Part shown: one piece after another, positions 48,084 through 64,000 of the stretch
Numbering within the stretch: position 1 is the stretch's first letter
How the letters are laid out: the number at the start of each line of letters is the position of its first letter
The notes under the pieces: model-generated
The model's input: only the letters and a program-made list of their open reading frames with translations
What the model was told of the DNA's origin: nothing
Databases searched by the model: none
Translations under genes and position numbers: made by a program
Source: Obrimoposthia wandeli
Taxonomy: Eukaryota
NCBI GenBank assembly: GCA_977020255.1
Contig: CDROCS010000122.1
Span: 248,001 to 312,000 of the forward strand
DNA length: 64,000 nucleotides
Direction of reading: 5' to 3'

Positions 48084-49442
48084 GTGACTCTATTCACTCA
48101 GACGCAATCTAACGATCGTATATTTACCGTTTCAAGCCTTAATGCTGAAGTGCGTTTATTGCTTGAAAATGAAATGGGCATAGTGTGGCTCGTCGGTGAG
48201 CTATCCAATTTATCGATGCCTGTTTCGGGACATTGGTATTTCACCCTTAAAGATTCGCGTGCTCAAGTGAAATGTGCCATGTTTCGTGGCAACAATCGCC
48301 GCGTCACATTTAAGCCTGCCAACGGCACACAAGTTCTGGTAAAAGCACGTTTATCATTGTACGAACCGCGTGGCGATTATCAGCTCATTATCGAGAGCAT
48401 GCAGCCTGAAGGCGATGGTCGATTACAGCAGCAATTTGAACAACTTAAGATGTCGTTAGCGGCAGAAGGCTTATTCGCTCAAGCATTGAAAAAACCGCTA
48501 CCCGAACAGCCTAAAAGAGTCGGTATTATCACCTCTAAAACAGGGGCCGCGTTGCATGATATTTTAACTGTTTTGCACCGTCGTGATCCCAGCTTACCTG
48601 TCGTCATTTATCCCACGATGGTACAAGGTAATGGTTCTGCTATTTCGATTGCTCAAGCCATTGGTCGGGCGAATGCAAGACAAGAATGTGATGTGCTGAT
48701 CGTAGGCCGTGGGGGTGGTTCGCTAGAAGATTTATGGGCATTTAACGAAGAGATTGTCGCGCGTACAATTGCCGCCAGTCAAATCCCGATTGTGAGTGCT
48801 GTCGGTCATGAAGTAGATGTGACCATTGCCGATTTTGTGGCTGATATGCGTGCTCCTACTCCATCAGCTGCTGCTGAATTGGTTAGCCGTGATATCACCC
48901 ATCAAACACAAAAAATACAACAAAAAAGCCAACAACTTAAGAATGCTATTCGCAATTATCTATCTAAGCGTGAAGCGAAAACAGTTCAATTAACCCATCG
49001 CTTAGAGCGCCAACACCCTCAATTACGTCTTAATCAACAGCAACAGCATCTTGATGATATTTCTAGCCGTTTAGAGCTCGCGATGGGGCGATTACTATCG
49101 AGTCATCATCAACATGTAGAGCGTATAAACTACAAACTATCACTGCACTCACCAGTGCAAACGATTAAAGATAATCAAACTACATTAGACCAAAGAAAGC
49201 GACGTTTACTCGATGCGATGGATCACCGCTTATTAAATGCGAATCACAAGTTAGCACTGGCGGCTGAAAAATTAGAAACAGTAAGCCCATTAGCAACACT
49301 CAGTCGTGGCTATTCAATAACCCGAGACGCTAAAGGTAAAGTGGTTCGCCATATTGACCAAGTGAAACCCGGCGATAAATTAGTAACGAAAGTGACTGAT
49401 GGAGAAATACACTCAACAGTGAGTGAGTCACTTCTTTCTTAA
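48084..49442 (+). CDS. xseA: Exodeoxyribonuclease VII large subunit
   Basis: GTG start; [36 protein letters not shown]. Confidence 0.97.
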
Positions 49443-49472
49443 ATCAAGCTAGAGTAAATGTAAATGGGTGCG

Positions 49473-49599
49473 AGTTTTGTTGGGCTTTATGCGGTGTTAC
49501 TTATTTTCAACGTAGAACGACTAGGTCTATAAATAAGTGCCTTGCCTAGTGCCCAACAAATTCTCGCTGAAACGAGCATCTTGAGGTGACTTGGGTATA
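49473..49599. repeat. 127-bp dispersed repeat (ERIC/MITE-like, GGGTATA end), copy 1
   Basis: Nearly identical to 62457-62583; internal inverted repeat TTGTTGGGC..GCCCAACAA; ends GCATCTTGAGGTGACTTGGGTATA. Confidence 0.9.
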
Positions 49600-49633
49600 T
49601 ACACTCGGTTTTTACACGGTGAATAGATAATTA

Positions 49634-49858
49634 TTACACAGATTCAAAGCGTATTGTGATTCGCGATTTTGACTTTAATTCATTGCAAAAATTACAAAAA
49701 TAACTGGCTGAACCGCACGCTTGAAGCTTTTCCATTTCATGTTCACAGTCAGGGCAAAAAACATGCTTTTTGACTGTGTGTTGGCAAAAATCACAATAAT
49801 ACCCATCGTCTTTCCAGCTCAATTCGCTCTGACAATCGGGGCAAACATTATCACTCAT
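49634..49858 (-). CDS. yfgJ: Zinc-ribbon protein, YfgJ family
   Basis: CPDC..CDFC..CPDC..LQACG..YFCNFCNELKSK. Confidence 0.9.
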   Translation of the reverse strand: MSDNVCPDCQSELSWKDDGYYCDFCQHTVKKHVFCPDCEHEMEKLQACGSASYFCNFCNELKSKSRITIRFESV

Positions 49859-50102
49859 AACCTTCCCTTTCTTTCAAACCATCTTCCCACATGATGAGCG
49901 ATCATATAATCAAGCACAAACAAAATTATTGAGCCTAGATCAATCCTTTGATCCAACGCATAAATAGGCTTTATCTCGATCACGTTCGCATAAAAAACAA
50001 ATAAGAAAACCAGTCTATATAACCGGTTTCATTGTTCCGCTATTGTTTTTGTGTCCATTATACCAATAACATTCTGTTTAATGATCTAAAGGTAGGCTTG
50101 CT

Positions 50103-51539
50103 ATGTCGACAAACAAAATCAGCTCAGCGTTTCCTGATAACTTTTTATGGGGGGCTGCATCTGCCGCTTATCAAGTGGAAGGTGCCCATAACGCAGATGG
50201 AAAAGGTCCTTCCATTTGGGATAATTTCTCTCACCAACCAGGCACTACTTACGAAGGGACAAATGGCGACGTAGCAGCAGATCACTACCATAGATTTAAA
50301 GAAGATGTGGCATTAATGGCCGAGATGGGCATGCAAAGTTACCGGTTTTCAATCAGTTGGCCTCGCCTATTTCCCAACGGTCATGGAGCGATCAATAAAG
50401 CGGGGGTTAAATTTTATAGTGATTTAATTGATGAATTAATTATGCATGGCATTAAGCCCATGATCACCCTGTATCACTGGGATTTACCGCAAGCATTACA
50501 AGATATTGGTGGCTGGGAATCACGTGAAACCGTAGAAGCATTCGAACAGTATGCGGCGTTATGTTATCAAGAATTTGGTGATCGCGTTTCACTATGGTCG
50601 ACCTTCAACGAAGCATTAATTTTTATCGGTATGGGTTATTTTACAGGGGCTCACCCTCCAGGCTTAAGCGATCCTAAACGCGGTATTCAAGCTTGCCACC
50701 ATGTTTTTGTCGCGCATGCTAAAGCAGTAAAAACGTTCCGTGAATACCAACAGCAACAACGCGTACCACAAGACGGACAAATCGGCTTTGTTAATGTCAT
50801 GCAACCGCATGATCCCATCACAGACAAACCAGAAGATATTGCCGCATGTAAAATGGCGGATGATCTGCTAACACACTGGCTTTACGATCCTGTATTAAAA
50901 GGTGAGTACCCTGCGCACATTCTTAATATTACCCAGCTAACATGGGGGGTGCCTGTATTTTCACCTGGAGATGATGATTTACTTAAAAACAACATCTGTG
51001 ATTTCATTGGGGTGAATTACTACAAGCGAGAATGGATTGCAGCCAATCCAGATATTAGTAATACCAAAATAAATACAACAGGTAATAAGGGTTCCGGACA
51101 AGAGTTTGGTATTAAAGGTCTATTTAAGTTTGTTCATAATCCTCAATCTACCTATACCGATTGGGATTGGGAGATTTACCCTGAAGGCTTATCTGTTGGC
51201 ATGCTGCGATTAAAAGAGCGATACGGTGATATTCCGTTCTACATAACTGAAAATGGTTTAGGTGCAAAAGACCCGATCATTGATGGAGAAATCGTTGACC
51301 AACCTCGTATTGATTACCTATCAAGCCACATTGATGCTGCTGAATCGGCGATTAAGCAAGGGATTGATCTTCGTGGATACTACCCATGGTCTTTCATTGA
51401 CTTACTGAGTTGGTTAAACGGTTATCAAAAACAGTATGGTTTTGTATACGTCGATCGCGAGAATAATTTGCAGCGAAAACGTAAGAAGTCTTTTTTCTGG
51501 TATCAGGAAGTGATTGAATCAAATGGTGCTAAGCGTTAA
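50103..51539 (+). CDS. GH1 family (6-phospho-)beta-glucosidase, GmuD-like
   Basis: FLWGAASAAYQVEG, TFNE and ITENG catalytic motifs, WSFIDLLSWLNGY. Confidence 0.92.
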   Translation: MSTNKISSAFPDNFLWGAASAAYQVEGAHNADGKGPSIWDNFSHQPGTTYEGTNGDVAADHYHRFKEDVALMAEMGMQSYRFSISWPRLFPNGHGAINKAGVKFYSDLIDELIMHGIKPMITLYHWDLPQALQDIGGWESRETVEAFEQYAALCYQEFGDRVSLWSTFNEALIFIGMGYFTGAHPPGLSDPKRGIQACHHVFVAHAKAVKTFREYQQQQRVPQDGQIGFVNVMQPHDPITDKPEDIAACKMADDLLTHWLYDPVLKGEYPAHILNITQLTWGVPVFSPGDDDLLKNNICDFIGVNYYKREWIAANPDISNTKINTTGNKGSGQEFGIKGLFKFVHNPQSTYTDWDWEIYPEGLSVGMLRLKERYGDIPFYITENGLGAKDPIIDGEIVDQPRIDYLSSHIDAAESAIKQGIDLRGYYPWSFIDLLSWLNGYQKQYGFVYVDRENNLQRKRKKSFFWYQEVIESNGAKR

Positions 51540-51939
51540 CCGCCTTGATCAGGCGTAAGCCAGCAATTGCCCGACTTCGTTCGGGCGTTTCAAAAGCCAC
51601 GGCAAACGCCGTGTACCAAACAATTAATGCCTTAGATTATAAACCAAGCAGGCTTTACAGCTAATAGATAAGCAAGAGATCAGCACTATTGCTCCATTTT
51701 CAGGCAACGTGATCGTTCGTGAATCAGTTGATCATTTATGAAAAGGATTGTGATCAGCGATCTGGTGCTAAAAGAACATTTATGAATACACATCCCGAAA
51801 GCATAAGTTACATGTTCTGTATATGGACTTCACACAGAATAAAGCACTACTCAGTGGTCATTTAAGTGAAAGATCTAGATGTAAGTATATATAAGATCAA
51901 CTCTCATCTCTCGTTAATTGTCACTCTATTCATCCGCGT

Positions 51940-52503
51940 TTTTACGCTCAATAACAAATAAGGATTAAGTGTCGCGCCTTATATCAATGTAACCAGTGTC
52001 ACCATCAAGCTTCATTGATATCAGGCACTCTTTTTACCCATTCTAAACTGCCTTTAACTTTCTGCTTTATAGCCATTTATCTAATAACACAAGAAAAGAA
52101 TGGCAGCTCGGTGTCTCATACAACACGGCTCGGCGAGTGAAAAAAAGCTCATTTATGCCCTAAATCACTGGTTATATCTGATGGCCTTGCTTGTTTTCGT
52201 GGTGTTGAGGATGCAGAAAGTTTTCACCATTTAATAGTAACCGGCGGGGGTGCTGATTGTGTAGAGTTGCCGTATTTTAAATGGGTTAAAACAATGATCG
52301 GTAACGTAAAAAACGCAATACATGGAACATATCATTCAATCAACAAAAAGCACCTGCCGCGCTATCTGGCAGAGTTCTGTTTTAAGTTTAATAGGTGTTT
52401 TAATTTAGAGAAGATGCTTGAACAGTTAATATTTTCAAGTATTCAAACGGCACCGATGCCTCAACGTCTCCTCAAGTTAGCTGAGGCTCGATGGTAATCA
52501 AGT
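51940..52503 (+). mobile_element. IS1595-family transposase relic with internal deletion
   Basis: LYQCNQCHHQASLISGTLFTHSKLPL (Zn ribbon) and SDGLACF..WVKTMIGNVK..GTYH..KHLPRYLAEF..FNR..AEARW; catalytic core missing; GTAATCAAG end. Confidence 0.85.
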
Positions 52504-52851
52504 AAGACTATAGCCTTCACCGATATCATATATTAGCTTCATAATTCAACCTCAGACAATCATGCCTAAAATATATATAATGCACTGTTTAATAAGTGCT
52601 TTGGTGCATTTATCCGATTCAAATCAGAGTTCCAATTGATTACTAAAGACAAAAATCGCTTATTAATAACAAAGCAGTCAGTTAATTGCATTTATTGATA
52701 TACCTCGCAATATAAATAGTTTGCCATGTTTAATTGTAAATATTATTTTATTATTCTAGCCGAAAAATAAATGCTCAAATATTTGTTTCTAAATGACAAT
52801 TCACATTAATCATTAATTTAAAATAAACATAACAACAAAGAGTGAACGAAT

Positions 52852-53109
52852 ATGATCAATAAAATAGCTACCATAATCTCGCAAATTAAAAACAATTCTT
52901 CACTCGCCGAATCTATTACTTTAGATTGCCATCTTATCGAAGATGTCGGTTTAGATTCTCTTGATATCATTGATTTCTTATTAGAACTTGAAGCAACTTT
53001 TGAATTACAGTTTGATTTTGATGAACTTGATTTTTCTATCATGCAAAGCATGCGTTTATTGATTGAATTTATCCAAGAACAACAAGCACGCAGTATAGAA
53101 ACATGTTAA
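52852..53109 (+). CDS. Acyl carrier protein
   Basis: 85 aa, acidic, DVGLDSLDIIDF phosphopantetheine-Ser motif, LEATFEL. Confidence 0.9.
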   Translation: MINKIATIISQIKNNSSLAESITLDCHLIEDVGLDSLDIIDFLLELEATFELQFDFDELDFSIMQSMRLLIEFIQEQQARSIETC

Positions 53110-54374
53110 CTAGCACAGCATGGGCTTGCTTTAATGCCGAGCCTCTCTGGAATGACTCCCGTCTTGCATCTCTTCCCGCATTTGCTAACGAAGTTCAGGA
53201 TAGGCAAGTTCACTTTTTTGATGAAGTACAAGTACCGCATCATTCACAAGAAAGTGTTCTCTGTTTAATCGCTCCTGACCCAGCTTTAACGCGTTACCAT
53301 GAAAGCCTTGATCTCGACATTAAACGCCAGGCATTCTTTGCGGAATTTTCTGCTTGGCAGCAAGCAGGCGAACCTACTTGGCGTGACAGCGACAGCCTTC
53401 AGAATAGACTCTTGAATGCTATTAAAAACGGCCAGCAGGCACCTTTTGCTTGTGTCCCTAGCGCTTATGAAAATTCTTTTGATGCCTCTCACCTACCTAG
53501 CTACAACAACGTAGTCAAGGTCAATGATAAACGCTACGCAGTTGACTCATGTCAGCTGCTCAATATCAAAAATTATGGTACGAACCTCTCTTCCATAAAT
53601 TGCATCAACTCACTGAAAAAATTACAATTACCGATAATTTTAAAAGAGCCTTTTGGTGTTTCAGGTAAAGGTAGCCTCGTCATAAAACACACAACCGTTT
53701 TGAGCCGGATTTGCCAGCACTTTGAAAAACAAAGCTTAAAAGGTAAACAAATTGGCCTAGTGGTTGAACCTTTCCTTGATAAAGAATTGGACTTTTCAAG
53801 TCAGTGGGAAATAAAACAAGACGGGAATGTTTCATTACTGAATATCTCAGAGATCATCAATGATAAACTCAAGTTTTCAGGGGTTAAACCTGCGTCAAAA
53901 CGCCTTCTTGGATTATTAAACAATCATTCCTATATCGAACAAATGACAACCTTACTTGAAACCGTTTACAAAGATGGTTACTGGGGGCCGGTGTGCATTG
54001 ATTCGATGTCACTCAAAGATGGGTCTTTAGTTCCAGTTGTAGAGATCAATGCTAGAGAATCTATGGGGGCTATTGCTCAACGTTGGTTCGCTATATTCGG
54101 CACTCCAGAGTCCATTTTGTTTCATCAGTATTCCGTAAAGTACTCTCAACCTATTGATATTTCTGTTTTACTTGAACAATTAGAACAACGGGGTTGTTTA
54201 TACACTAAAAATCGATCTGCAGGTTATGTATTACTTAATAGCCGCTGCCTACAGATCCCTTCAGAACAACCTCAAATAGGCCGCCTGTACCTATTGCACA
54301 TTGGTAATAATGAAGTAGAAAGTAAAAAACGCCTTGAGCTTGTTTTATCGCAACAAGGATCATGCATTCTATGA
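53103..54374 (+). CDS. ATP-grasp ligase (Pgm1/BtrJ-like)
   Basis: ILKEPFGVSGKG, VVEPFL, DFSSQW, GYWGPVCIDSM, VVEINAR. Confidence 0.8.
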   Translation: MLTSTAWACFNAEPLWNDSRLASLPAFANEVQDRQVHFFDEVQVPHHSQESVLCLIAPDPALTRYHESLDLDIKRQAFFAEFSAWQQAGEPTWRDSDSLQNRLLNAIKNGQQAPFACVPSAYENSFDASHLPSYNNVVKVNDKRYAVDSCQLLNIKNYGTNLSSINCINSLKKLQLPIILKEPFGVSGKGSLVIKHTTVLSRICQHFEKQSLKGKQIGLVVEPFLDKELDFSSQWEIKQDGNVSLLNISEIINDKLKFSGVKPASKRLLGLLNNHSYIEQMTTLLETVYKDGYWGPVCIDSMSLKDGSLVPVVEINARESMGAIAQRWFAIFGTPESILFHQYSVKYSQPIDISVLLEQLEQRGCLYTKNRSAGYVLLNSRCLQIPSEQPQIGRLYLLHIGNNEVESKKRLELVLSQQGSCIL

Positions 54375-55441
54375 GTGCTTCAGTTGCGATCTTAACTTCC
54401 AGCAGTGGACTAGGCAGCTTTGTTCCGGCGGTCACTTTATCCAAATTATTGCAAAAACAAGGTTTCAAGGTGACCTTTCATGCTATTGAGCAATTGTATT
54501 CAGCCCAAGCTCTTGAGCGATTTTTAAGAACTCAAGCTCAATGTCAAAAAAACCTTCGTATCGCTATGCTTACCCAAAAATGGTTAGAACAAACCCCTCA
54601 ATCCATTAATGACGCTATTGATACAATCAAATTGGCAGCATTAGTCAGACAGTGGCAAAACAATAATACAAAAAAATTCATTCTCTTTAGTGGCTTTTGG
54701 ACTTCTTTATTAAATGAGGCCTCCTTACTCCCTGATACTGAGATAGAAGCGATGCACCTTGATGTCGGCCTGTCGTTATCTTGGAAAAATAGCCCCAAAT
54801 TAAAGATTAAACATAATTGGTTATTATCCTCATCCTCTTTGCAGCACTTAGTACCGCCTACACCTAACATCGTTTGGCAGCAGCGTTTACCTAGAGTTGC
54901 TTTGCATGGCGGGGGATGGGATATCGGTAATATTGACCAATATATCCCTCAGTTACGGCAGCATTTCACCTTATTGATTAACGACTCTTCTCTGCCTGAC
55001 CCTGCTCATACTGACCATCGATTAATCTCTGATCCAAGTTGGTTGCCGTGGCAGCAAGGTTGTACAAACAATGGGCAATTTCCACCTCAATATTTACGTG
55101 TTAATAACCACACCATTGAAGGAAAAAATGCAGCCGAATCTTTCTTCCAACAACAACTTTCCAACTGTTTGGCATTAGTAACAAAACCTGGAGGCGCGAG
55201 TTTAATCGACAGCTTCGCAACCTCGACACCACTGGTTCTTCTGCCGCCATTTGGTGACTACGAAAAAGAAAATGGGACAAGTTGGATAGAACAGGGATTT
55301 GCTCTCTCTTTTGAAGATTGGCAAGCACAAGGGTTTTCTCTGGATGCATTAGAGAAGTGTCATCATAAACTCTTACACGCTAGCACACACCGACAAGTTT
55401 ATGGAGAATGTTATGCAAACCAATACCTCACTAAAGCTTGA
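54371..55441 (+). CDS. GT-B fold glycosyltransferase-like protein
   Basis: ATGA overlap with the upstream stop; SSGLGSFVPA N-terminal loop, HGGGW, LVTKPGGASLIDS..PLVL..GDYEKEN donor-binding-like region. Confidence 0.65.
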   Translation: MSASVAILTSSSGLGSFVPAVTLSKLLQKQGFKVTFHAIEQLYSAQALERFLRTQAQCQKNLRIAMLTQKWLEQTPQSINDAIDTIKLAALVRQWQNNNTKKFILFSGFWTSLLNEASLLPDTEIEAMHLDVGLSLSWKNSPKLKIKHNWLLSSSSLQHLVPPTPNIVWQQRLPRVALHGGGWDIGNIDQYIPQLRQHFTLLINDSSLPDPAHTDHRLISDPSWLPWQQGCTNNGQFPPQYLRVNNHTIEGKNAAESFFQQQLSNCLALVTKPGGASLIDSFATSTPLVLLPPFGDYEKENGTSWIEQGFALSFEDWQAQGFSLDALEKCHHKLLHASTHRQVYGECYANQYLTKA

Positions 55442-56636
55442 TGAAAATGGTTTTTCACGCCTAAAAGAACGAGCAAAACAGATAGCGTCAACACGCCGTG
55501 GACTTCAACAACGCCCTGATTGGGCTGCAGATTTACCACAGCAAGTCGGTATAAAAATGAACAATCATTGTAACCTTCGTTGTAAGCATTGTTTTGAGTG
55601 GAATGAAGAGGGCTATCACCACCAGCTTGGTAATAGTGAACGTGGTAATGAAATTCCGCTTGCTATGGTAGAGAAATTACTCAAAGCCACAGAGTCAACC
55701 CAAGCCCCTTTCTATTTATGGGGCGGTGAACCTTTAATGTATAAAAACATGCAAGGTTTAATGGATCTGTTCGAGCAATATCCAAGATGGATAACCATTT
55801 GTACCAACGGCCTACTTATTGAAAAGCATTTAGAGCAGTTAATGAGGGTAGATCAACAGCTTGCCTTATTAGTGAGCCTCGACGGCCTAGAAGAAGATAA
55901 TGATGCTATTCGTGGAAAAGGCGTATTTAAGCGCGTTGAGGCCTCGATTAAGAAGATCCTAGCACTCAGGAAAGCGAACCAATTTTCTGGGAAAATCTCT
56001 CTTTGCTTAACCATCAACGATAGTACTGTTGGTAAGCTTTACGACTTTGTTCAGTATTTTTCGGATCTCGGTATTGATAGTGTTTACATGGTATTCCCTT
56101 GGTATATACCAAAAAATGTCGCTATGCAAATGAATGACTGGGTAAAGAAAGAGCTGCCATGGAAACAAGCTAAGCTTGATGCCTCGAATGTGAACACAAT
56201 AACAACTCACGCAGCTACACCAAGAAAAAAACCTGATAACGAATACAGCTGGCACGGTTATACCTACCACTTATCACCTGAAAACATTCCCGCTTTACTC
56301 GACGACATTGCAAGAATTGGTAAAGAAACTTGGAGATGCCGGGTACGCTTTCATCCAAACCTAGAACCTCATGAAGTGGAAGGTTTCGTTAAAGGCAGCA
56401 CCAAGCCTGCTGAAAATAAAACCTTTTGCACGGCCATCCGTAATCGTTTAGATGTTCTGCCAAATGGAGATGTCTCAAGTTGTAAGTTTTTCCCCGAGCT
56501 TGAAGTCGGCAATCTACAGCTTATTCCCCTTAAAGATATTTGGCATGGACGCGCCTACCAAGCGTTTCGTAAACAGCTCAATTGTGGACTGATGCCAGTA
56601 TGCTCTAAATGCACTCTGCTCTACAGTACAGGTTAA
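55413..56636 (+). CDS. Radical SAM enzyme 1 with twitch/SPASM-type C-terminus
   Basis: CNLRCKHC, WGGEP, TNG, SLDG; C-x17-C..CSKC; GGAG RBS before ATG 55413. Confidence 0.92.
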   Translation: MQTNTSLKLDENGFSRLKERAKQIASTRRGLQQRPDWAADLPQQVGIKMNNHCNLRCKHCFEWNEEGYHHQLGNSERGNEIPLAMVEKLLKATESTQAPFYLWGGEPLMYKNMQGLMDLFEQYPRWITICTNGLLIEKHLEQLMRVDQQLALLVSLDGLEEDNDAIRGKGVFKRVEASIKKILALRKANQFSGKISLCLTINDSTVGKLYDFVQYFSDLGIDSVYMVFPWYIPKNVAMQMNDWVKKELPWKQAKLDASNVNTITTHAATPRKKPDNEYSWHGYTYHLSPENIPALLDDIARIGKETWRCRVRFHPNLEPHEVEGFVKGSTKPAENKTFCTAIRNRLDVLPNGDVSSCKFFPELEVGNLQLIPLKDIWHGRAYQAFRKQLNCGLMPVCSKCTLLYSTG

Positions 56637-56648
56637 ATAGGAAATCTC

Positions 56649-57737
56649 ATGTCAATCACTAATATTCTACAAAACAAACTCCCTATCTGGGTCACCCTGC
56701 AACTCACTGATGCCTGTAATCTTCGCTGTAAAATGTGTTACGAGTGGGGTGAAAATGGCTCTTACCATGGCCGGAAACTGTCTCGCCTTGATAAAGACGT
56801 CGCTTTTCGTGTGATCGATGAGTGTTTACCCGTTAAACCCTATTTTGCCTTATTCGGTGGCGAACCCATGATGTATCCATGGTTTGAAGACATTGTTGGC
56901 CGTATTCGTCATGGTGGCTCACGAGTTGATGTCCCAACCAACGGCACATTTTTAAAGCGCAAAGCCGAATCACTGGTAGAAACCCCACCAAACCGACTTT
57001 GGGTATCATTAGATGGGCCAGAAGAAATCAATGATGCTCAGCGTGGAGAAAACGTCTATAAAAAAGTTCAAGAAGGGGTGGAAACACTATTTGAACTCAG
57101 AGAAACCAAAGGGTTAAAAGAACCAAAAATTGGTTACACTTTCATTGTAACACCGCATACCCACCTCTACATTCAAGGGTTCTTTGAGAAATGTTTAAAC
57201 CTCGACATGGTGGATCACATCAGTATCGAGTTCCAAACTTTTGCAACCGAACAAGAGCATGAGAAACATCTCCGATTATTTAAACGATTATTTGGCGTTC
57301 AAGAGACCCCTTGTGCTGCAGGGATGATCGATGATGTGCGTAAGTTTGAAATGATGGATTATTCTGCAATTGAGTCCCAAATAAGCTGGGTTCAAAAAGA
57401 GTGTATAAAACGAGATATCTACTTCGTTTGCTACCCTAAAACTATTGCTCACGACAACTACAAAGCGTATTTCAACAAACAATACCAAAATCTCATCGAC
57501 AAACGAGATAACTGTTTTTTCCCTTGGATTTATATGGAAGTAGCCTCCAATGGTGACGTCACACCATGCCATACCTTCTACGATGTACCACTAGGTAATG
57601 TGAATAACAGCAGCGTACCAGAGATCTGGAACGGCAGTGTTATGAAAAACTTCCGTCGCCAGCTTCGTAATGAAGGTGGGTTATTCCCTATCTGCGGTTC
57701 ATGCGCCCGTTACTACGCTGATCCAAACAAACGATAA
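56649..57737 (+). CDS. Radical SAM enzyme 2 with twitch/SPASM-type C-terminus
   Basis: CNLRCKMC, FGGEP, TNG, SLDG; C-x17-C..CGSC. Confidence 0.92.
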   Translation: MSITNILQNKLPIWVTLQLTDACNLRCKMCYEWGENGSYHGRKLSRLDKDVAFRVIDECLPVKPYFALFGGEPMMYPWFEDIVGRIRHGGSRVDVPTNGTFLKRKAESLVETPPNRLWVSLDGPEEINDAQRGENVYKKVQEGVETLFELRETKGLKEPKIGYTFIVTPHTHLYIQGFFEKCLNLDMVDHISIEFQTFATEQEHEKHLRLFKRLFGVQETPCAAGMIDDVRKFEMMDYSAIESQISWVQKECIKRDIYFVCYPKTIAHDNYKAYFNKQYQNLIDKRDNCFFPWIYMEVASNGDVTPCHTFYDVPLGNVNNSSVPEIWNGSVMKNFRRQLRNEGGLFPICGSCARYYADPNKR

Positions 57738-57763
57738 TAGAGCTGTGATAAAGGATAGATAAG

Positions 57764-58768
57764 ATGAGCTATATTTCCGTTAAAAACCTTAGCAAGGAAT
57801 TTCCTTACTACCGCAAACAGTCTGGCCTTAAAGCTTCACTGAAAAACTTATGGTCTCGTGAACTGCATTCTAAACAAGTGGTCAACTCTGTATCTTTTGA
57901 TGTTGAACAAGGCGAAATCGTCGCTTTTATTGGCCCCAATGGCGCAGGTAAAACCACCACTATGAAGATGCTTTCGGGCATTCTTCACCCCTCGTCGGGA
58001 GAAGCAACCGTCATGGGGTATACACCTTGGGAGAGGAAAAAAGCATTTAAAATGCGATTTTCGATTGTTATGGGACAGAAGCAGCAGTTGTGGCCTGACC
58101 TACCTGCAATTGATAGCTTTGAACTCAATAAACGTATTTATGAAATTGATGACAATAGCTTTAAACAGGTACTCGGTGAGCTCAGCGAGATCCTTAATGT
58201 ACGTCACTTGCTCGACATTCAAGTTCGCCGCTTATCCCTTGGTGAACGGATGAAAATGGAATTGATCGCGGCTATGCTGCATCAGCCCGATGTGATTTTT
58301 TTAGATGAACCCACTTTAGGGCTCGATTTCCTCTCACAGAGAGCGATTTTGGCCTTCCTGAAAACACTGTCGCAAGAGAAAAAAACCACTATGTTACTCA
58401 CCAGCCATAACATGGTGGATATTTCAACCTTATGTAATCGTGCTTTAGTGATAGAGAGCGGTGGCCTAGTGTACAACGGGGAATTAAGTGATCTAAATAG
58501 CGTTGTGGGCGCCAAGCGTCATCTTCATATTCATACTCATACGCCTGTCATTCCGGCTGATTTTTCTTCTTTTGGTCACATTGTGCAATTCAGTAGCAAT
58601 GAAATTGTTTTAGAGGTGACTAAACAGGAGTCCAATGCCGTCTTATCTCGCATATTGAATCAGGTGGATGTGGCTGATATCAATATAAAAGAAGCACCAT
58701 TAGAAGAAAGTTTAGAACGTCTCTATAGCAATTTGAAGGATCATAACAGCTTGAAGGTGCTTGCATGA
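57764..58768 (+). CDS. ABC exporter ATP-binding subunit
   Basis: GPNGAGKTT, LSLGERM, IFLDEPT, LTSH. Confidence 0.93.
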   Translation: MSYISVKNLSKEFPYYRKQSGLKASLKNLWSRELHSKQVVNSVSFDVEQGEIVAFIGPNGAGKTTTMKMLSGILHPSSGEATVMGYTPWERKKAFKMRFSIVMGQKQQLWPDLPAIDSFELNKRIYEIDDNSFKQVLGELSEILNVRHLLDIQVRRLSLGERMKMELIAAMLHQPDVIFLDEPTLGLDFLSQRAILAFLKTLSQEKKTTMLLTSHNMVDISTLCNRALVIESGGLVYNGELSDLNSVVGAKRHLHIHTHTPVIPADFSSFGHIVQFSSNEIVLEVTKQESNAVLSRILNQVDVADINIKEAPLEESLERLYSNLKDHNSLKVLA

Positions 58769-59565
58769 GCAAGTACTTATTTATCATAAAAATGGGGTTA
58801 CAGATGTCCCTTACTTATCGGCTCAATTATGTCATAAGTTTGCTTTCTTCTGCCTTCCCAATTTTACTCCAAGTGATGCTGTGGCATGCCATATTCACTT
58901 ACACTGGGGCGGAAAAAGTGTATGGCTACTCATATTCAGAAATGATGGCCTACACCTTATTTGCTTCTCTCATTGGGCAGGCATTGCGGACTGGATTTGA
59001 ATATGAAGTCGCTAAAGATATTAAGGAAGGTGGATTAAACCGCTTTCTTATTCAACCTTTATCTTATCTAGGTTATCGCTTTTCCGCTTATGTGGGCACC
59101 AATATGAGTTATTTTATTGCCACATTAATTCTGCTTGGGTTATGCGGCCTTTTATTGGTCCATTTACTCGATATTTTCTTCACCTTAAAATCTTATTTAT
59201 TGCTGATCATCGTGCTTCTTGCCGCATTTATGATCCAGTTCTTTCTTTTTTATATGATCGGGTTAGTGGCTTTTTGGGCACAGGAAGTCTGGGGGGTATT
59301 TGAATCTGTCCGTATTGTTGGCCTTGTTCTCTCTGGTGGTATTTTTCCATTAACCGTATTTGGGGAGCTAGGAATGGAAATATTAAGTTATTTGCCATTC
59401 CAGTACGTAATTTTCTTCCCTATTGAAGTGGTGTTAGGACGTGCAAGCGATTCCGACATTTTTACTGGCTTTTCCATTCAACTGTTTTGGATTGGGTTAC
59501 TTTGGTTCTTGTCACGTTTAGTTTGGCAGCGTGGTTGTAAAAGCTTTATTGCATTAGGAGGCTAA
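58765..59565 (+). CDS. ABC-2 type permease (DUF990-like) 1
   Basis: Six hydrophobic segments; EVAKDIKEGGL..FLIQP, LSGGIFPL, LPFQY..FP. Confidence 0.85.
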   Translation: MSKYLFIIKMGLQMSLTYRLNYVISLLSSAFPILLQVMLWHAIFTYTGAEKVYGYSYSEMMAYTLFASLIGQALRTGFEYEVAKDIKEGGLNRFLIQPLSYLGYRFSAYVGTNMSYFIATLILLGLCGLLLVHLLDIFFTLKSYLLLIIVLLAAFMIQFFLFYMIGLVAFWAQEVWGVFESVRIVGLVLSGGIFPLTVFGELGMEILSYLPFQYVIFFPIEVVLGRASDSDIFTGFSIQLFWIGLLWFLSRLVWQRGCKSFIALGG

Positions 59566-59567
59566 CC

Positions 59568-60383
59568 ATGATCAATGAAATGTGGTGTGAGCTGGTGAAA
59601 CATGCTCGTATTTACGGATTTTTACTTAAAATAAACGCCATGCGTCAATTAGAGTACCGGCTTAATATTGCGCTAAACATCATGGTGGAAATGGGGTATT
59701 TAGGGGTTAAATTGATTTACGCCTACATCATTCATGATACAGGGGTACACATTGCGGGGCTTTCTCCTGACAGCATCTACTTGTTCATTGGTACTTATAT
59801 GTTAATGACGGTTTTTTTCGTTAGCATGCTGCAATTCAATATCGTGGTGTTTGATCAACAGATCCGAGATGGCGATTTTGATTTGATCCTCACAAAACCT
59901 GTCTCTTCTCAATTTATGGCGACGCTGAAGCACGTAGATACATGGATTTCGATCCCAAACATTATCGTGGGGCTTGGCCTTATCGGCTACGGCTGGCACG
60001 CTTCCGAGGTTGCTTTTAGCATCACCAATATTGTGGGATTTACCAGCTTTATTGCTTTGGGTATTGTCACCATGTATGGCCTGTTTGTACTACCTCTTTT
60101 ATTGGCCTTCAAGTTTAAAAACATCTCCGCGCTACAGAGTTTTTATTGGGCTATGTGGGATTTTAATAATCTGCCCCATAAAATCCACATTAGACCCGTT
60201 CAGCTGATGGGAGCCGTAGTATTCCCCTTGTTTTTGATCACTAACTGGTCGCCTCTGTTTGTGCTCGACCAACTATCAACACCAGAACTTATTTGGGGCA
60301 TCGTAGCGCCTGTCATTCTATTTTCGTTAACTCGTATTCTATGGAAAGTAGCCCTAAAACATTATGAAAGTGCCACCAGCTAA
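59568..60383 (+). CDS. ABC-2 type permease (DUF990-like) 2
   Basis: LEYRLN, IRDGDFDLILTKPVSSQF, hydrophobic, ends LKHYESATS. Confidence 0.85.
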   Translation: MINEMWCELVKHARIYGFLLKINAMRQLEYRLNIALNIMVEMGYLGVKLIYAYIIHDTGVHIAGLSPDSIYLFIGTYMLMTVFFVSMLQFNIVVFDQQIRDGDFDLILTKPVSSQFMATLKHVDTWISIPNIIVGLGLIGYGWHASEVAFSITNIVGFTSFIALGIVTMYGLFVLPLLLAFKFKNISALQSFYWAMWDFNNLPHKIHIRPVQLMGAVVFPLFLITNWSPLFVLDQLSTPELIWGIVAPVILFSLTRILWKVALKHYESATS

Positions 60384-60397
60384 AAAGGAGTATCACC

Positions 60398-61159
60398 TTG
60401 TTCGATTTATCAGAAAGAACCATTTTTATTACAGGTAGCTGCCGAGGCATTGGTTTGGCCATGGCAAAAGCCTTGCACAGCCAAGGAGCCAATGTTGCCA
60501 TTACTGCGCGCAATACTGAAAGCTACCCAAATATTTTACAGCACTTTCCAAGCGCACCAGACAACGTATTAGTTTTAGATTGTGACATTACTGATCCAGA
60601 TTCGATCGAAGCAGCAGTGCAGGCTACCGTCAACTGGAAAGGTGTGTTGCATGGTTGTATTGCCAATGCAGGTGAGCGTGGTGCTGGCATGAAAGTAACA
60701 GACATGCCTTATGATAGTTGGCAAGAAAGCTTGAATACCAACCTTAATGGTACGTTCCATACATTAAAAATCGTCGCAAAAAAAATGCAAACACAAGATC
60801 TGGGGGGGCGACTATTAGCGACTGCGAGCTTATCAAGTTTAAAAGGAACCGCAGGGTTTGCGGATTATGGTGCGAGCAAAGCGGCCATTAACTCCTTATG
60901 CCGCTCTTTAGCGGTAGAACTAGCGCCGAATAAGATCACTGTCAACTGTGTATTACCTGGCTGGGTCGAGACGGATATGAACAAAGATGTTGTCAATGAT
61001 AGAAGACAATACGAGTCTATCAAACGCCTTCGTATCCCTGCTGGACGCTGGGCGACTCCAGAAGACATTGCCCCTGTTGCTGTTTACTTAATGTCTGAAG
61101 AAAGCCGCTACCACACTGGCGATTCTCTAACCATTGATGGCGGATACGCAATCTTTTAA
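60398..61159 (+). CDS. Short-chain dehydrogenase/reductase
   Basis: TTG start with AAGGAG RBS; TGSCRGIG, NAG, YGASK, PGWVET. Confidence 0.93.
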   Translation: MFDLSERTIFITGSCRGIGLAMAKALHSQGANVAITARNTESYPNILQHFPSAPDNVLVLDCDITDPDSIEAAVQATVNWKGVLHGCIANAGERGAGMKVTDMPYDSWQESLNTNLNGTFHTLKIVAKKMQTQDLGGRLLATASLSSLKGTAGFADYGASKAAINSLCRSLAVELAPNKITVNCVLPGWVETDMNKDVVNDRRQYESIKRLRIPAGRWATPEDIAPVAVYLMSEESRYHTGDSLTIDGGYAIF

Positions 61160-61167
61160 GGTTATTT

Positions 61168-62292
61168 ATGAACACGATATATCCCGATTCACAGCCTACT
61201 CTTCTACAATCTAACCTTTTACAAACCAACCTCGACTTAATGAACCAATCCACATTTGAGTTTGATACAGCAAGGCTAGAATCGCCACCGAATTGCTTTG
61301 TATTTGGACTTTATACCTTGGGGGCGTTGAATGAAAATATCCCATCACTCGCCAGTGTGTTTTCTGAACATAGCTTCTCCTACTGGGATGATCACCACCA
61401 ACACCCTAACCTTATTGACCCAGATACTCTGTTCACTAAATTTGGCTTCTGTAGGCAGCAAAGCGAACCGTATTTAGATGTATATGCAGACCGAGTGGAA
61501 GGAAAAATGATAAACTTGCTCGCTGCTCGCTGTGGCATCGAAGCTGAAGTTATACCCTTTACAGACTTTAATAAATTGATGGCGTATTTTGGTCAGCAAA
61601 TGGCCCAGCAGCAACCCGTATTGTGCGACTTCGATATGGGTTACATTCCATCGCGACATCAGTATAAGATCATACGCGGTTATGAGCATGTAGTCTTTTT
61701 TACACAGTTTGATCAAAATACTCAGCAGCTTTTATTGTGCGATCAAGATGAACTAAAGGATCCCGTTCCACTCGCTGATGTAGAAGCATGCTTTGACTCT
61801 ATGCTGAAAATGAAAGGAACGTTCAATTGTTACCAAGCGAAAGCGACAATAAAGAAAAGTCAATTCCTCTCCCCAAGTGACATCCGAAACGATGTGAGAG
61901 CCAATGTAGATAATTTAACCACAACGAATCCAAAGCTAGGTATGCAAGCAATTAATCGCTATTTAGAGTCGATGAAACAAGTTAAGCCGCTCAATACCCC
62001 ATTTTATGTCTTTGGTCACTGGGTGTTTGCACTACAACGAAATATGCAAGTACGCTGGTGTGATTTAGCACTGCAATCACTGGATTCTCAGGCTCAAAAA
62101 ACCGCAGCCCAAGAATTAAAGCAGCACCTTTCCCTTGTGGCAAATAAATGGAATGAATTTACCATGCTTGATAAATTGAGCCGGAAGATCGATCGTGTTA
62201 CGCCAGCTCAGGTGGCGCAAAAATGTATTGATGCTGCAACATTGGAACTAGACAGTCCACGTTATTGGCTGGCATTACAAAAGGTGCTTTGA
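61168..62292 (+). CDS. BtrH-like protein (papain-like acyltransferase/hydrolase fold)
   Basis: N-terminal NCF; PVLCDFDMGYIP..Y....EHVVFF..FD....LLLCD resembles BtrH_N; helical C-terminus (GMQAI..QR..KW..E). Confidence 0.6.
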   Translation: MNTIYPDSQPTLLQSNLLQTNLDLMNQSTFEFDTARLESPPNCFVFGLYTLGALNENIPSLASVFSEHSFSYWDDHHQHPNLIDPDTLFTKFGFCRQQSEPYLDVYADRVEGKMINLLAARCGIEAEVIPFTDFNKLMAYFGQQMAQQQPVLCDFDMGYIPSRHQYKIIRGYEHVVFFTQFDQNTQQLLLCDQDELKDPVPLADVEACFDSMLKMKGTFNCYQAKATIKKSQFLSPSDIRNDVRANVDNLTTTNPKLGMQAINRYLESMKQVKPLNTPFYVFGHWVFALQRNMQVRWCDLALQSLDSQAQKTAAQELKQHLSLVANKWNEFTMLDKLSRKIDRVTPAQVAQKCIDAATLELDSPRYWLALQKVL

Positions 62293-62308
62293 TTAGCAAA
62301 ATGGTATC

Positions 62309-62355
62309 AATAGAAAGGGGAAAGAGGCGTACTCCTAACCTTTTCTATTTCTTTT
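62309..62355 (+). terminator. Possible terminator closing the 10-gene operon
   Basis: AATAGAAAGG..CCTTTTCTATT imperfect stem plus T-rich tail. Confidence 0.45.
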
Positions 62356-62456
62356 GAAATTACGGCGATTTCTCTTGAGTAAAGTCATTCATGCCTGGGT
62401 CAAGTTCAAACACTTTTGACACAGAAGTAGATACGCTGAATCACTCCCGAAGGGCC

Positions 62457-62583
62457 AGTTTTGTTGGAATCTATGCGGTGTTACTTATTTTCAACGTAGA
62501 ACAACTAGGTCTATAAATAAGTGTCTTGCCTAGAGCCCAACAAATTCTCGCTGAAACGAGCATCTTGAGGTAACTTGGGTATA
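62457..62583. repeat. 127-bp dispersed repeat (ERIC/MITE-like), copy 2
   Basis: Direct-orientation near-copy of 49473-49599; ends GCATCTTGAGGTAACTTGGGTATA. Confidence 0.9.
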
Positions 62584-62603
62584 AAGTTCTACTAAAAAAA
62601 TAA

Positions 62604-63479
62604 CTAGGGTTTTGTGTGGGTAACCATTACCAATTCTTGATCGCTAACGAGTTCAAACTGAACATATAGCGCACTGTATTCTGCAAGTGATTGTATGTGA
62701 GAGCCACCGCATGGGATTTCAATCATTTCCTTCTCCCCTAAATCACATTGCCAGTAACGTGAATCGGTTAACTGCGTACCTTCACGGCGCATCACTACCT
62801 CAGCACCACTCTGACGCCAAGTTTCTAACTGCTGGTTAATGAGTTCAGTTAACGCCACTAAATTAGCCAGCATATCTGCCGTATTTAGCCCACGTTTGCG
62901 TAATGTTTTACCTAACCGATAAGTATCAGTACTTTTATCTTCACTCACAATGCTCTGCTGCTGAGCGTAACTGTGAAAATCGTAATGCCCTAATTCATCT
63001 TTACGTGAGGCATCTTTACGCCAATAATCGCTATGTAACACTTTATTAAGTGCTAAAGAAGAAAGATGTCCTGCACTATGCCCACGGCTTAATGCCTGCT
63101 GATTAGCCTTATCAACCGACAAGATGACGGTATCTCCCCTGCTCCATTGAACGTCTTCAGCAATATAATGCACAACAACAAATGCCCAACCAGACACATC
63201 ACGCTTAACGGGAATGTCTGTGCCGACATAAAGCGTATTCGTTGCTAAATTAACAGCACCTGTAAAACAACCTGCCACATCAAAACATATTTCTCCCACA
63301 GTCATAGTGCCTTTATCTGCAGGGTGATCAGGCCAAATATGACTAACAGGATGAAAACAGGTGCGATCTGTCACTACATATACACCACGTGAAATGGCTG
63401 GTTCACATAGCTGAATTTCAGCTTCTGTTTGCCATTGTGGCACCGTAAATAGCACGTGGGTTGGTGTAACATCAGACAT
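62604..63479 (-). CDS. AlaX-like tRNA-editing domain protein
   Basis: RTCFHP, HSAGH and PCGGSH Zn-binding motifs. Confidence 0.85.
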   Translation of the reverse strand: MSDVTPTHVLFTVPQWQTEAEIQLCEPAISRGVYVVTDRTCFHPVSHIWPDHPADKGTMTVGEICFDVAGCFTGAVNLATNTLYVGTDIPVKRDVSGWAFVVVHYIAEDVQWSRGDTVILSVDKANQQALSRGHSAGHLSSLALNKVLHSDYWRKDASRKDELGHYDFHSYAQQQSIVSEDKSTDTYRLGKTLRKRGLNTADMLANLVALTELINQQLETWRQSGAEVVMRREGTQLTDSRYWQCDLGEKEMIEIPCGGSHIQSLAEYSALYVQFELVSDQELVMVTHTKP

Positions 63480-63626
63480 ATTTTGAACCTTTATTTATGA
63501 TGGTATCAATATCGACAAGTCTCAGGGCGCGACTTATCAAAAATAGTAAACACGACGGAAGCACAGATAAAAAAATACCCAACACAAGGCTGGGCATTTC
63601 TATTAATACGCTGTTAATAAGACAAG

Positions 63627-64000
63627 TTACTTACGGCGACCGTGAAGCACACCCGTCAAACGCTTACGTTGACGTTCTTGAGAAACAGTTAATTTCTGCT
63701 TCGTTGTTTCAAATGGGTTTTCACTATTCTGGAATTGAATACGAATTGGTGTACCCATCATTTCTAATGAACGACGGTAGTAGTTCATTAAGTAGCGCTT
63801 GTATGATGCTGGCAGATCATTAACCTGATTACCGTGAATAACGATAATTGGTGGGTTGTAGCCACCTGCGTGTGCATACTTTAACTTCACACGACGTCCA
63901 CGAACCATTGGTGGTTGGTGATCATCTTGAGCCATTTGCATAATACGTGTTAGAAGCGATGTACTAATACGCTTAGTTGCTGACTTATATGCTTCAATAA
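63627..64000 (-). CDS. der: Ribosome biogenesis GTPase Der, C-terminal KH domain (partial)
   Basis: [58 protein letters not shown]. Confidence 0.96.

Follow-up and report, generated by a model that had tools for sequence, protein, structure and literature searches.

Twitch-domain radical SAM enzymes (BtrN, MoaA, SkfB and DesII-like proteins) form a small and mechanistically rich group, in which each characterised member has brought new chemistry. BtrN, the founding enzyme, is the 2-deoxy-scyllo-inosamine dehydrogenase of butirosin biosynthesis, and DesII and BlsE, radical SAM enzymes of sugar nucleotides and nucleoside sugars, act on sugars at carbinol or adjacent C-H bonds. In the radical SAM epimerases of the NeoN, HygY and EpeE type, the substrate radical receives a hydrogen atom from a catalytic Cys. 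The twitch domain is a shortened SPASM domain with the ligands for one cluster, in place of the seven-Cys motif for two, and the auxiliary cluster of BtrN has four Cys ligands in an enzyme carrying out a two-electron oxidation (PMC9012708). In aminoglycosides, the radical SAM dehydratase AprD4 acts together with the NADPH reductase AprD3 for C3-deoxygenation of the sugar (PMC5461906).

The window analysed here, a stretch of 64,000 nucleotides, carries on its forward strand the two same-strand paralogous radical SAM genes that the earlier note had described in tandem, RS1 (55413-56636, 407 aa) and RS2 (56649-57737, 362 aa), separated by 12 nt. The encoded proteins share 25% identity over ~380 residues (E 3e-33) and fell into two separate clades (support 100) in a joint tree; by sequence, they are anciently diverged paralogues within the SPASM/twitch branch of the radical SAM superfamily. 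The RS1 reading frame spans 55401-56636, and its true start is likely 55413, as previously annotated, because GGAG is found 6 nt upstream and the homologues (~390 aa) begin at the equivalent Met. The ATG of RS2 is preceded by AGGAA 7 nt upstream.

Both proteins exceeded the Pfam cut-offs for Radical_SAM (PF04055; 59.9 bits for RS1 and 60.9 for RS2, cut-off 29.5) and SPASM (PF13186; 48.0 and 56.4 bits, cut-off 21.5), and their predicted partial TIM-barrel models (AF2, pLDDT 91.5 and 92.0) matched radical SAM structures with Z values >20. The region of the SAM-cluster motif reads CNLRCKHCFEWNEEG in RS1 and CNLRCKMCYEWGENG in RS2. The CNLRCKxCxEW and GGEP motifs reported earlier are indeed found in both, CNLRCKxC and GGEP being invariant among the homologues. 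Invariant Cys residues were C53/C57/C60, C130 and C339/C357/C397/C400 among 50 homologues of RS1 (407-aa numbering), and C23/C27/C30, C252 and C289/C307/C349/C352 among 51 homologues of RS2. The C-terminal residues form the auxiliary sets C339-x17-C357...C397-x2-C400 and C289-x17-C307...C349-x2-C352, respectively. A fifth C-terminal Cys of RS1, C391, is not conserved, being Gly or Ser in other lineages. As each family has four invariant C-terminal Cys only, and the chains end 7-10 residues past the CxxC, too soon to fit the remaining half of a SPASM motif, both are by sequence of the twitch type with a single auxiliary site, and not full SPASM proteins with the 7-8 Cys pattern, in agreement with the earlier note. 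Each enzyme is predicted to hold two clusters, the [4Fe-4S] cluster for SAM cleavage at CxxxCxxC and, in a BtrN-like twitch domain, a single auxiliary one with all its ligands from Cys.

Outside these shared elements, RS1 presents a private 17-aa insertion and a conserved N-terminal extension of 45 residues, in which F14 and P42 are invariant. In the AlphaFold model, this extension is a single helix (residues 11-33), too small for an RRE; it is absent from the RS2 model. Pfam matches in the two proteins were limited to Radical_SAM, SPASM and Fer4_12, with no PqqD/RRE or B12-binding domain, which bears out their reported absence. Outside the twitch domain, each family keeps one additional invariant Cys, C130 of RS1 within a "CTNG" strand and C252 of RS2, which might or might not correspond to the catalytic Cys of the radical SAM epimerases; EpeE reached a structural Z of only 14.7-16.6.

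Neither protein reached the cut-off of any curated family, and no characterised homologue of either was found. Among the NCBIfam maturase models, the highest score was 96 for NF033640 (N_Twi_rSAM, cut-off 170), followed by 87-91 for the tungsten-cofactor model TIGR04317 (cut-off 380), 55-58 for NirJ (cut-off 515) and 42-56 for the anSME model TIGR03942 (cut-off 349). The earlier note had set its reading against membership of the heme, cofactor or sulfatase maturases; scores with the anaerobic sulfatase, heme (NirJ, AhbC/D), tungsten-cofactor, MoaA, PqqE-type and mycofactocin (MftC) models lie 5-10 times below the cut-offs. Membership of the RRE-dependent RiPP maturases was likewise rejected, given the lack of a PqqD match, the one-helix N-terminus of RS1 and the lack of any such extension in RS2. 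B12-dependent radical SAM enzymes were discarded on the missing B12-binding Pfam match and a structural Z of only 13-14 with Mmp10, and prokaryotic viperins because the PADLOC pVip matches (52-54 bits) were confined to the radical SAM core and the NCBIfam viperin_w_prok scores were 43-50 against a cut-off of 180.

Upstream of RS1, the window encodes an 85-aa acyl or peptidyl carrier protein with a GLDSL phosphopantetheine site (52852-53109; PF00550 26.5 bits, cut-off 20.8; weak ACP matches in NCBIfam), whose gene also precedes the one for the ATP-grasp ligase at related loci. It is followed by an ATP-grasp ligase of the PGM1/peptide-ligase type (53103-54374), which overlaps the ACP stop codon by 7 nt and is the probable loader of the carrier protein. 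Its family profile matched the peptide ligase 8ynd (7e-14) and PGM1 (3wvq, 3.5e-8), and its homologue at the related locus L016 matched Pfam ATP-grasp_3 and PreAtp-grasp. The next gene (54362-55441) encodes a GT-B-like (GT28/UgtP-like) putative glycosyltransferase, an assignment based only on the C-terminal half of the family profile, which matched 9wde, a processive diacylglycerol glucosyltransferase (2.9e-7), and further GT-B enzymes; the protein had weak UgtP matches in NCBIfam and no Pfam match. In almost all related loci, this gene lies immediately 5' of RS1 or of RS2-RS1.

Downstream of RS2, and also on the forward strand, are genes for a DrrA-like ABC transporter ATPase (57764-58768; PF00005 92 bits, TIGR01188 drrA subfamily 189.8, below the cut-off) and two ABC-2 (ABC2_membrane_6) permeases (58765-59565 and 59568-60383; PF06182 83.1 and 100.9 bits), kept together with the ATPase gene in most related loci. 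These are followed by an SDR-family NAD(P) oxidoreductase (60398-61159; adh_short_C2 202 bits), the proposed redox partner of RS2, and a BtrH_N-like papain-fold protein (61168-62292; PF14399 27.7 bits, just below the cut-off of 29.7), a putative carrier-protein-dependent transferase or release enzyme. Weak, sub-cut-off BtrH_N matches recur in the Pseudoalteromonas and Paenibacillus versions of the cluster.

The core of this arrangement (ACP, ATP-grasp ligase, GT-B-like protein and RS1, mostly with the ABC-2 exporter) was found at 80 genome loci and also at metagenome loci. Relatives of RS1 are encoded in the genomes of >560 species, and the protein clusters of RS1 and RS2 from genomes and metagenomes number in the hundreds. 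The cluster was present in about 30% of the sampled Paenibacillaceae and in 4 of 251 Vibrionaceae, in none of 400 other Gammaproteobacteria sampled, and scattered among marine Gammaproteobacteria, Actinomycetota, cyanobacteria and spirochaetes, and a genome may hold as many as three or four copies. In some variants, an AMP-binding loader takes the place of the ATP-grasp ligase, accompanied by an NDP-sugar epimerase/dehydratase, a BtrH_N protein and methyltransferases, FkbM among them; GT2 enzymes and KAS III-like genes likewise appear in variant loci, as do FkbM methyltransferases.

RS2 is an accessory gene linked to RS1. Among 201 Paenibacillaceae genomes, RS1 was detected in 60 and RS2 in 24, all of which also hold RS1, and the 25 RS2 copies without exception adjoin an RS1 or sit within ~1.4 kb of one. 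RS1 was found without RS2 in 36 of the 60 genomes and, over all the loci compared, at 61 of 97. Metagenome loci with at least 2.5 kb of sequence on either side of RS2 (n = 33) carried an RS1 within 6 kb in 30 cases. Three gene orders were observed (RS1>RS2, RS2>RS1 and RS2-GFO-ACP-RS1), and the subclades of both RS1 and RS2 match them.

Of 35 scorable RS2 loci, 34 also encoded an NAD(P) oxidoreductase (SDR, GFO/IDH/MocA or NDP-sugar epimerase/dehydratase), versus 20 of 54 loci without RS2, an association that comprises only about four phylogenetically independent contrasts (sign-test p 0.25). In sister Paenibacillus loci, RS2 and a GFO/IDH/MocA oxidoreductase are either both there or both missing, as a unit that is gained or lost (L016 and L109 versus L029, L047 and L049). 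RS2-like genes that stand alone, some of them in carbohydrate-active surroundings, have as neighbours a GH31 enzyme, a protein with a galactose-binding domain, and a GMC oxidoreductase with a gluconate-2-dehydrogenase subunit. Many RS1-only loci carry an oxidoreductase too.

Taken with these neighbours, RS1 and RS2 are most likely small-molecule tailoring enzymes and not RiPP or cofactor maturases, and we lean, if only slightly, towards placing them in an NRPS-independent, carrier-protein-dependent pathway with an optional sugar step by RS2. In such a pathway, the ATP-grasp ligase, or the adenylating enzyme of some relatives, would load an acid onto the carrier protein, and the GT-B enzyme would supply or attach a sugar. 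The signature radical step would belong to RS1, invariant and encoded beside the glycosyltransferase. The BtrH-like papain-fold enzyme may transfer or release the product, and the ABC-2 pump would export it. RS2 would provide an optional second radical step, dependent on the RS1 pathway, most likely by taking a carbinol hydrogen from the sugar moiety. The resulting sugar radical could be oxidised via the auxiliary cluster, or dehydrated, to a keto-sugar that the SDR (60398-61159) would then reduce, for a net epimerisation or deoxygenation; RS2 and the SDR thus probably remodel a sugar hydroxyl. The sugar or carrier-protein-linked small molecule proposed as substrate in the earlier note fits the conserved carrier protein, ATP-grasp ligase and glycosyltransferase and the genes of the variant loci. 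The sequential action suggested there is plausible, whether as oxidation, epimerisation or C-C bond formation. More speculatively, and with considerable doubt on our part, the core could define a widespread, undescribed class of NRPS-independent thiotemplated glycoconjugates, in which a BtrN-type RS1 performs an unprecedented reaction, for example forming a C-C or C-heteroatom bond from the sugar to a carrier-protein-tethered amino acid, with RS2 as a second radical remodelling step.

That a carrier protein is universal would be just as compatible with a tethered acyl or aminoacyl group, instead of a sugar, as the substrate of RS1 or of both enzymes, which we consider possible, if not what we expect. 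The reaction could then be a decarboxylation, a modification at the beta-carbon or the joining of the tethered unit to a sugar by a C-C or C-heteroatom bond, with the extra N-terminal helix of RS1 as a docking element for the carrier protein. Indeed, carrier protein and loader are as universal as RS1, the extension with its invariant F14 and P42 is missing from RS2, the decarboxylase BlsE is among the top structural matches, and no PLP enzyme or oxygenase that could modify a tethered unit was detected by Pfam in the window operon. However, in most layouts RS1 is encoded directly after the glycosyltransferase or the GT-RS2 pair and not after the carrier protein, and we know of no radical SAM enzyme of this architecture that uses a carrier-protein-bound substrate. 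An envelope function, in which the cluster makes or modifies a cell-envelope glycolipid or glycopolymer and the enzymes act on a lipid-linked sugar or acyl chain, would agree with the nearest solved relatives of the glycosyltransferase, which are diacylglycerol glycosyltransferases (UgtP, MGDG synthase), with the export of surface glycans by other ABC-2 transporters and with the FkbM, GT2 and KAS III-like genes of variant loci. We regard it as unlikely, since the patchy occurrence (30% of Paenibacillaceae, 4/251 Vibrionaceae, 0/400 other Gammaproteobacteria sampled), the several copies per genome and the highly variable accessory genes are typical of specialised metabolism, and the ATP-grasp enzyme is of the peptide-ligase type.

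The earlier note had also raised a possible heterodimer, and the adjacency of both genes with a 12-nt gap, the almost constant presence of an RS1 beside RS2 and the co-clustering of their subclades by gene layout would be expected if RS1 and RS2 formed an obligate heterodimer for one reaction. Nevertheless, this is quite unlikely: RS1 mostly occurs without RS2 (36/60 Paenibacillaceae genomes, 61/97 loci), so RS2 is not needed, RS2-like genes stand alone at L111, L171 and L185, and each protein keeps a complete SAM-cluster motif, GGEP and auxiliary Cys set. Finally, Pfam SPASM matches and a generic similarity to SkfB, SuiB, CteB, anSME and the tungsten-cofactor maturase model are what could be adduced for RS1 and RS2 as maturases of RiPPs, cofactors or metalloenzymes (sulfatase, heme, tungsten cofactor, PQQ or mycofactocin type). 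We judge this highly improbable, as Pfam detected no RRE/PqqD, no small gene apart from that of the carrier protein is conserved in the loci, the neighbouring genes include none for a target enzyme and all the curated maturase models scored far under their cut-offs.

RS1 and RS2 define two large, uncharacterised subfamilies outside every curated family and, as probable small-molecule tailoring enzymes, mark a widespread uncharacterised gene cluster for a carrier protein, a glycosyltransferase and an exporter. The loci offer a natural series for assigning the radical steps, from RS1 only to RS1 with RS2 and an oxidoreductase, and to ATP-grasp or adenylating loaders.

Compared with BtrN, both proteins show the same succession of a radical SAM core and a twitch domain with C-x17-C...C-x2-C. 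When the C-terminal domains were searched alone against the sequences of solved structures, BtrN was the sole match, besides a non-significant one to SuiB (E 0.31) for RS2, which upholds the auxiliary-site comparison of the earlier note: all four Cys of RS2 align with those of BtrN, and a weaker alignment covers the last three of RS1. The RS2 family profile matched BtrN at 2.4e-9. The context also resembles butirosin biosynthesis, with a small molecule, sugar-related genes, a carrier protein, an ATP-grasp ligase and a BtrH-like protein. However, full-length similarity to BtrN is only of superfamily level (E 2e-6 and 0.008, 16-20% identity), RS1 and RS2 are longer by 110-160 residues, and the structural Z of 17-18 is under those of BlsE, DesII and SkfB. 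A BtrN orthologue (DOIA dehydrogenase) was rejected, as the significant alignment covers the twitch segment only and genes for 2-deoxy-scyllo-inosose synthase and the aminotransferase are absent from the neighbourhood.

DesII and BlsE were the top structural matches of both models (DesII Z 23.7 for both; BlsE 23.5 for RS1 and 25.0 for RS2, rmsd 3.0-3.3 over 295-299 of 327 residues), although sequence identity is 15-17% and the window has neither the NDP-sugar 4,6-dehydratase/aminotransferase set that accompanies DesII nor the cytosylglucuronate genes of BlsE. Their margin over the RiPP maturases SkfB, SuiB and anSME is only 1-2 Z units, so the structural match cannot discriminate between sugar enzymes and RiPP maturases. 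The sactisynthase SkfB, also a twitch-domain enzyme, was the best full-length sequence match among solved structures (2.4e-8 and 6e-9; Z 22.5 for RS1 and 23.5 for RS2), but it has an N-terminal RRE, not found in RS1 or RS2, and a peptide substrate. With AprD4/AprD3 of aminoglycoside C3'-deoxygenation, the likeness is one of gene-pairing logic, in which a radical SAM enzyme shares its cluster with an NAD(P)-dependent reductase; RS2 is accompanied by an SDR, GFO or epimerase-type oxidoreductase, a link that is statistically weak once phylogeny is counted. Finally, although neither butirosin nor closthioamide biosynthesis uses a GT-B protein with a twitch radical SAM enzyme as here, and the BtrH_N matches here are sub-threshold, the stand-alone carrier protein, ATP-grasp loading and a papain-fold BtrH-like transferase recall butirosin BtrI/BtrJ/BtrH and closthioamide (PMC7183216, PMC12865890).

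Two ORFs on the same strand were found in the interval that the earlier note had assigned to tandem paralogous radical SAM enzymes with single-cluster twitch domains. The RS1 frame spans positions 55401-56636 (+ strand), and its true start is most likely 55413, as judged from a GGAG located six bases upstream and from homologues of about 390 aa that begin at a Met equivalent to this position. RS2 (56649-57737, + strand), preceded by its own AGGAA, follows after a gap of 12 bases. Both are encoded inside an operon of ten tightly packed and partly overlapping genes, which also comprises a carrier protein (52852-53109), an ATP-grasp ligase (53103-54374), a GT-B-like putative glycosyltransferase (GT; 54362-55441), an ABC ATPase with two ABC-2 permeases (57764-60383), the NAD(P) oxidoreductase SDR (60398-61159), and a BtrH_N-like protein (61168-62292). 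No riboswitch or other RNA was detected in an Rfam search of positions 49000-64000. An ORF of 291 aa on the - strand, 3' of the operon (62604-63479), had no match in Pfam or NCBIfam.

Analysis of both protein sequences revealed all the elements that had been listed for them, with the cluster motifs CNLRCKHCFEWNEEG in RS1 and CNLRCKMCYEWGENG in RS2, and GGEP in both. The paralogy is genuine (25% identity, E 3e-33), and a joint tree separated the two proteins into two clades with a very long branch between them. In alignments of 50 RS1 and 51 RS2 homologues, with identities down to about 40%, each family showed three invariant SAM-cluster cysteines, four at the C-terminus and one further, corresponding to C339-x17-C357...C397-x2-C400 plus C130 in RS1 and to C289-x17-C307...C349-x2-C352 plus C252 in RS2. 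A fifth C-terminal Cys of the window RS1 is not conserved among its homologues. As both chains end 7-10 residues past the CxxC, no second half of the SPASM motif is possible, and only Radical_SAM and SPASM were matched above the Pfam cut-off in either protein. The AlphaFold models (pLDDT 91.5 for RS1 and 92.0 for RS2) showed an N-terminal extension of one helix in RS1 and none in RS2, which excludes the RRE, the RiPP recognition domain expected in peptide maturases. In addition, the window RS1 carries a private insertion of 17 residues (around 56190-56240, residues about 260-276 of 407), missing from every aligned homologue and modelled with pLDDT below 50.

Neither protein reached the cut-off of any curated NCBIfam model, the scores being 96 for the N-terminal-twitch family (cut-off 170), 87-91 for the tungsten-cofactor maturase (cut-off 380), 42-56 for the anaerobic sulfatase maturase (cut-off 349), and 55-58 for NirJ (cut-off 515), so that RS1 and RS2 do not fall into an unrelated characterised family. 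A defence role of the viperin type was discarded, as the PADLOC pVip matches were partial and covered the radical SAM core only. The searches recovered around 535 RS1-like and 258 RS2-like protein clusters, every one of them named just "radical SAM protein", and the ESM Atlas added nothing beyond clusters of that same name. No characterised member was found in the full-text literature on this gene combination, a coverage that leaves out most subscription papers and does not prove absence. RS1 and RS2 each represent a new and widespread subfamily of twitch radical SAM enzymes of the BtrN type, encoded in an uncharacterised carrier-protein-dependent cluster.

Relatives of RS1 were detected in more than 560 stretches in the species-genome scan. 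Synteny analysis of 97 loci revealed an invariant block formed by the carrier protein, the ATP-grasp ligase, the GT, and RS1, usually with an ABC-2 transporter. The accessory genes were variable, including SDR, GFO/IDH/MocA (GFO) or Zn-ADH oxidoreductases, NDP-sugar epimerase/dehydratase, FkbM and other methyltransferases, KAS III-like proteins, GT2 enzymes, and very divergent BtrH_N-like proteins. PGM1-type peptide ligases were matched by the ATP-grasp profile, and the nucleotide-sugar half of UgtP-type GT-B enzymes by the GT profile. This gene set is predicted to encode an NRPS-independent, carrier-protein-dependent pathway whose small-molecule product would be glycosylated or acylated and exported by a dedicated transporter. 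In many metagenome loci, as well as in one of the Paenibacillus layouts, the presumed loader, the enzyme that would charge the carrier protein, was an AMP-binding enzyme. This Paenibacillus and metagenome variant (L094:4579-17775, and also L097-L104, L117, and L118) is ordered as ACP, AMP-binding loader, weak BtrH_N, NDP-sugar epimerase/dehydratase, GT, RS2, RS1, ABC-2 pump, FkbM, methyltransferase, and BtrH_N, and its AMP-binding loader indicates that the loader type is interchangeable. The longer Paenibacillus ATP-grasp proteins were considered as carrier-protein fusions and rejected as such, because no PP-binding domain is present in them and the ACP, with a GLDSL motif, is encoded by a small gene of its own upstream. 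Pairwise BLAST of the window BtrH-like protein against U360 and BtrH_N proteins from Paenibacillus gave nothing significant, and only weak Pfam matches suggest that they are related. Three cluster copies of different composition were present in the single genome of Paenibacillus sp. G001 (L007, L094, and L096): one with RS1 only, accompanied by GFO, FkbM, and BtrH_N; one in the order RS2>RS1 with the AMP-binding loader; and a divergent one with RS1 only.

Of the two enzymes, RS1 belongs to the core of these clusters and RS2 is accessory. RS2 was found in 24 of the 201 sampled Paenibacillaceae genomes, all 24 of which also encoded RS1, and the 25 RS2 copies of this sample were all located beside RS1 or at most about 1.4 kb from it; another 36 genomes carried RS1 without RS2. 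Likewise, 33 metagenome loci centred on RS2 had flanks of 2.5 kb or more on both sides, and in 30 of them RS1 lay within 6 kb. This near-constant neighbourhood argues that RS2 depends functionally on the RS1 pathway. The gene order was RS1>RS2 in Gammaproteobacteria and RS2>RS1 or RS2-GFO-ACP-RS1 in Paenibacillus, and the RS1 and RS2 subclades track these layouts. The earlier suggestion that the two proteins might work as a heterodimer is disfavoured in its obligate form, because RS1 normally occurs and works without RS2 and each protein has its complete set of motifs.

The distribution of the cluster is patchy. RS1 was present in 60 of the 201 Paenibacillaceae genomes, with a maximum of four copies in one genome. 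RS2 appeared in 4 of 251 Vibrionaceae, and RS1 in none of the 400 other Gammaproteobacteria sampled. One sampled Vibrionaceae genome (L193, G612:C19:8746-9363) contains only the first ~210 residues of an RS2 homologue within an open frame of 238 aa, and this copy may be truncated or decaying. Just 5' of the window operon, a LacI-type HTH fragment (51545-51664) and a C-terminal fragment of an IS1595-type transposase (52267-52497) were found, and GC content dips to 0.37 at 52-54 kb, features that fit an operon acquired horizontally as an island. The assembly is of eukaryotic size (1.35 Gb, 6912 contigs) and the contig is bacterial and Vibrionaceae-like, with guaA, guaB, and xseA, its nearest RS1 and RS2 being those of Veronia and Photobacterium; it probably belongs to an associated or contaminating bacterium within the host assembly. 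The RS1-RS2 stretch was also present in metagenome runs from food, invertebrate gut, hydrothermal vent, and sediment. Three host RNA-seq runs gave 0 reads on positions 52800-58700, and one metatranscriptome run gave a 266-nt contig on RS2 (57193-57458, a single mismatch), which is too little to claim transcription.

Regarding the reactions, RS2 and the GFO/IDH/MocA oxidoreductase were jointly present or absent between sister Paenibacillus loci, and an NAD(P) oxidoreductase accompanied RS2 in 34 of its 35 scorable loci, versus 20 of 54 loci without RS2. After phylogenetic correction, the association was not significant (four independent pairs, p 0.25), and with just four independent contrasts this link is only suggestive. 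Stand-alone RS2-like genes with no RS1 nearby were also observed (L111:5821-6873 and L185:10001-11047), one of them 60% identical to the window RS2. These few genes sit among carbohydrate-active genes, and their neighbours encode a GMC oxidoreductase with gluconate-2-dehydrogenase subunit 3, a galactose-binding-domain protein, a TonB-type outer-membrane barrel, a GH31 enzyme, or a MacB-type permease. Outside the cluster, members of the RS2 family may thus also take part in sugar catabolism or modification.

From the oxidoreductase linkage, the carbohydrate-active neighbours, the association of fully ligated auxiliary clusters with oxidative turnover (PMC9012708), and the precedent of AprD4/AprD3, in which a radical SAM enzyme is coupled to a reductase (PMC5461906), we favour a reading in which RS2 would convert a sugar carbinol into a keto intermediate, via dehydrogenation or diol dehydration, and the SDR would then reduce it, with epimerisation or deoxygenation as the net outcome. 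The reaction of RS1 is less constrained than that of RS2. The main alternative, less likely but plausible, is that RS1, or RS1 together with RS2, acts instead on a unit tethered to the carrier protein, which would fit the extra N-terminal helix of RS1 and the lack of any other enzyme modifying such a unit. Sugar carbinol oxidation or dehydration by RS2 remains our preferred reading; overall, the initial observation is confirmed, and the interpretation offered with it is supported in part.

Among solved structures, the two top structural matches of both models were the sugar-acting BlsE and DesII, whose lead of 1-2 Z units over peptide maturases in these predicted folds does not decide function. 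BlsE, DesII, SkfB, SuiB, and anSME (Z 21-25) all outrank BtrN, which over its full length gave E values of 2e-6 and 0.008 and Z 17-18. When the C-terminal domains alone were searched against all solved-structure sequences, the 83 residues of RS2 matched BtrN (E 0.005) and, non-significantly, SuiB (E 0.31), and BtrN was the sole match of the 77 residues of RS1 (E 0.06). In addition, the RS2 family profile matched the twitch segment of BtrN with E 2.4e-9. The likeness to BtrN invoked in the earlier note thus holds for the twitch domain; full-length orthology was not supported. BtrN has an auxiliary cluster with four Cys ligands and carries out a two-electron oxidation (PMC9012708); all four RS2 cysteines align on its C-x17-C...C-x2-C, whereas the weaker alignment of RS1 takes in the last three of its four.
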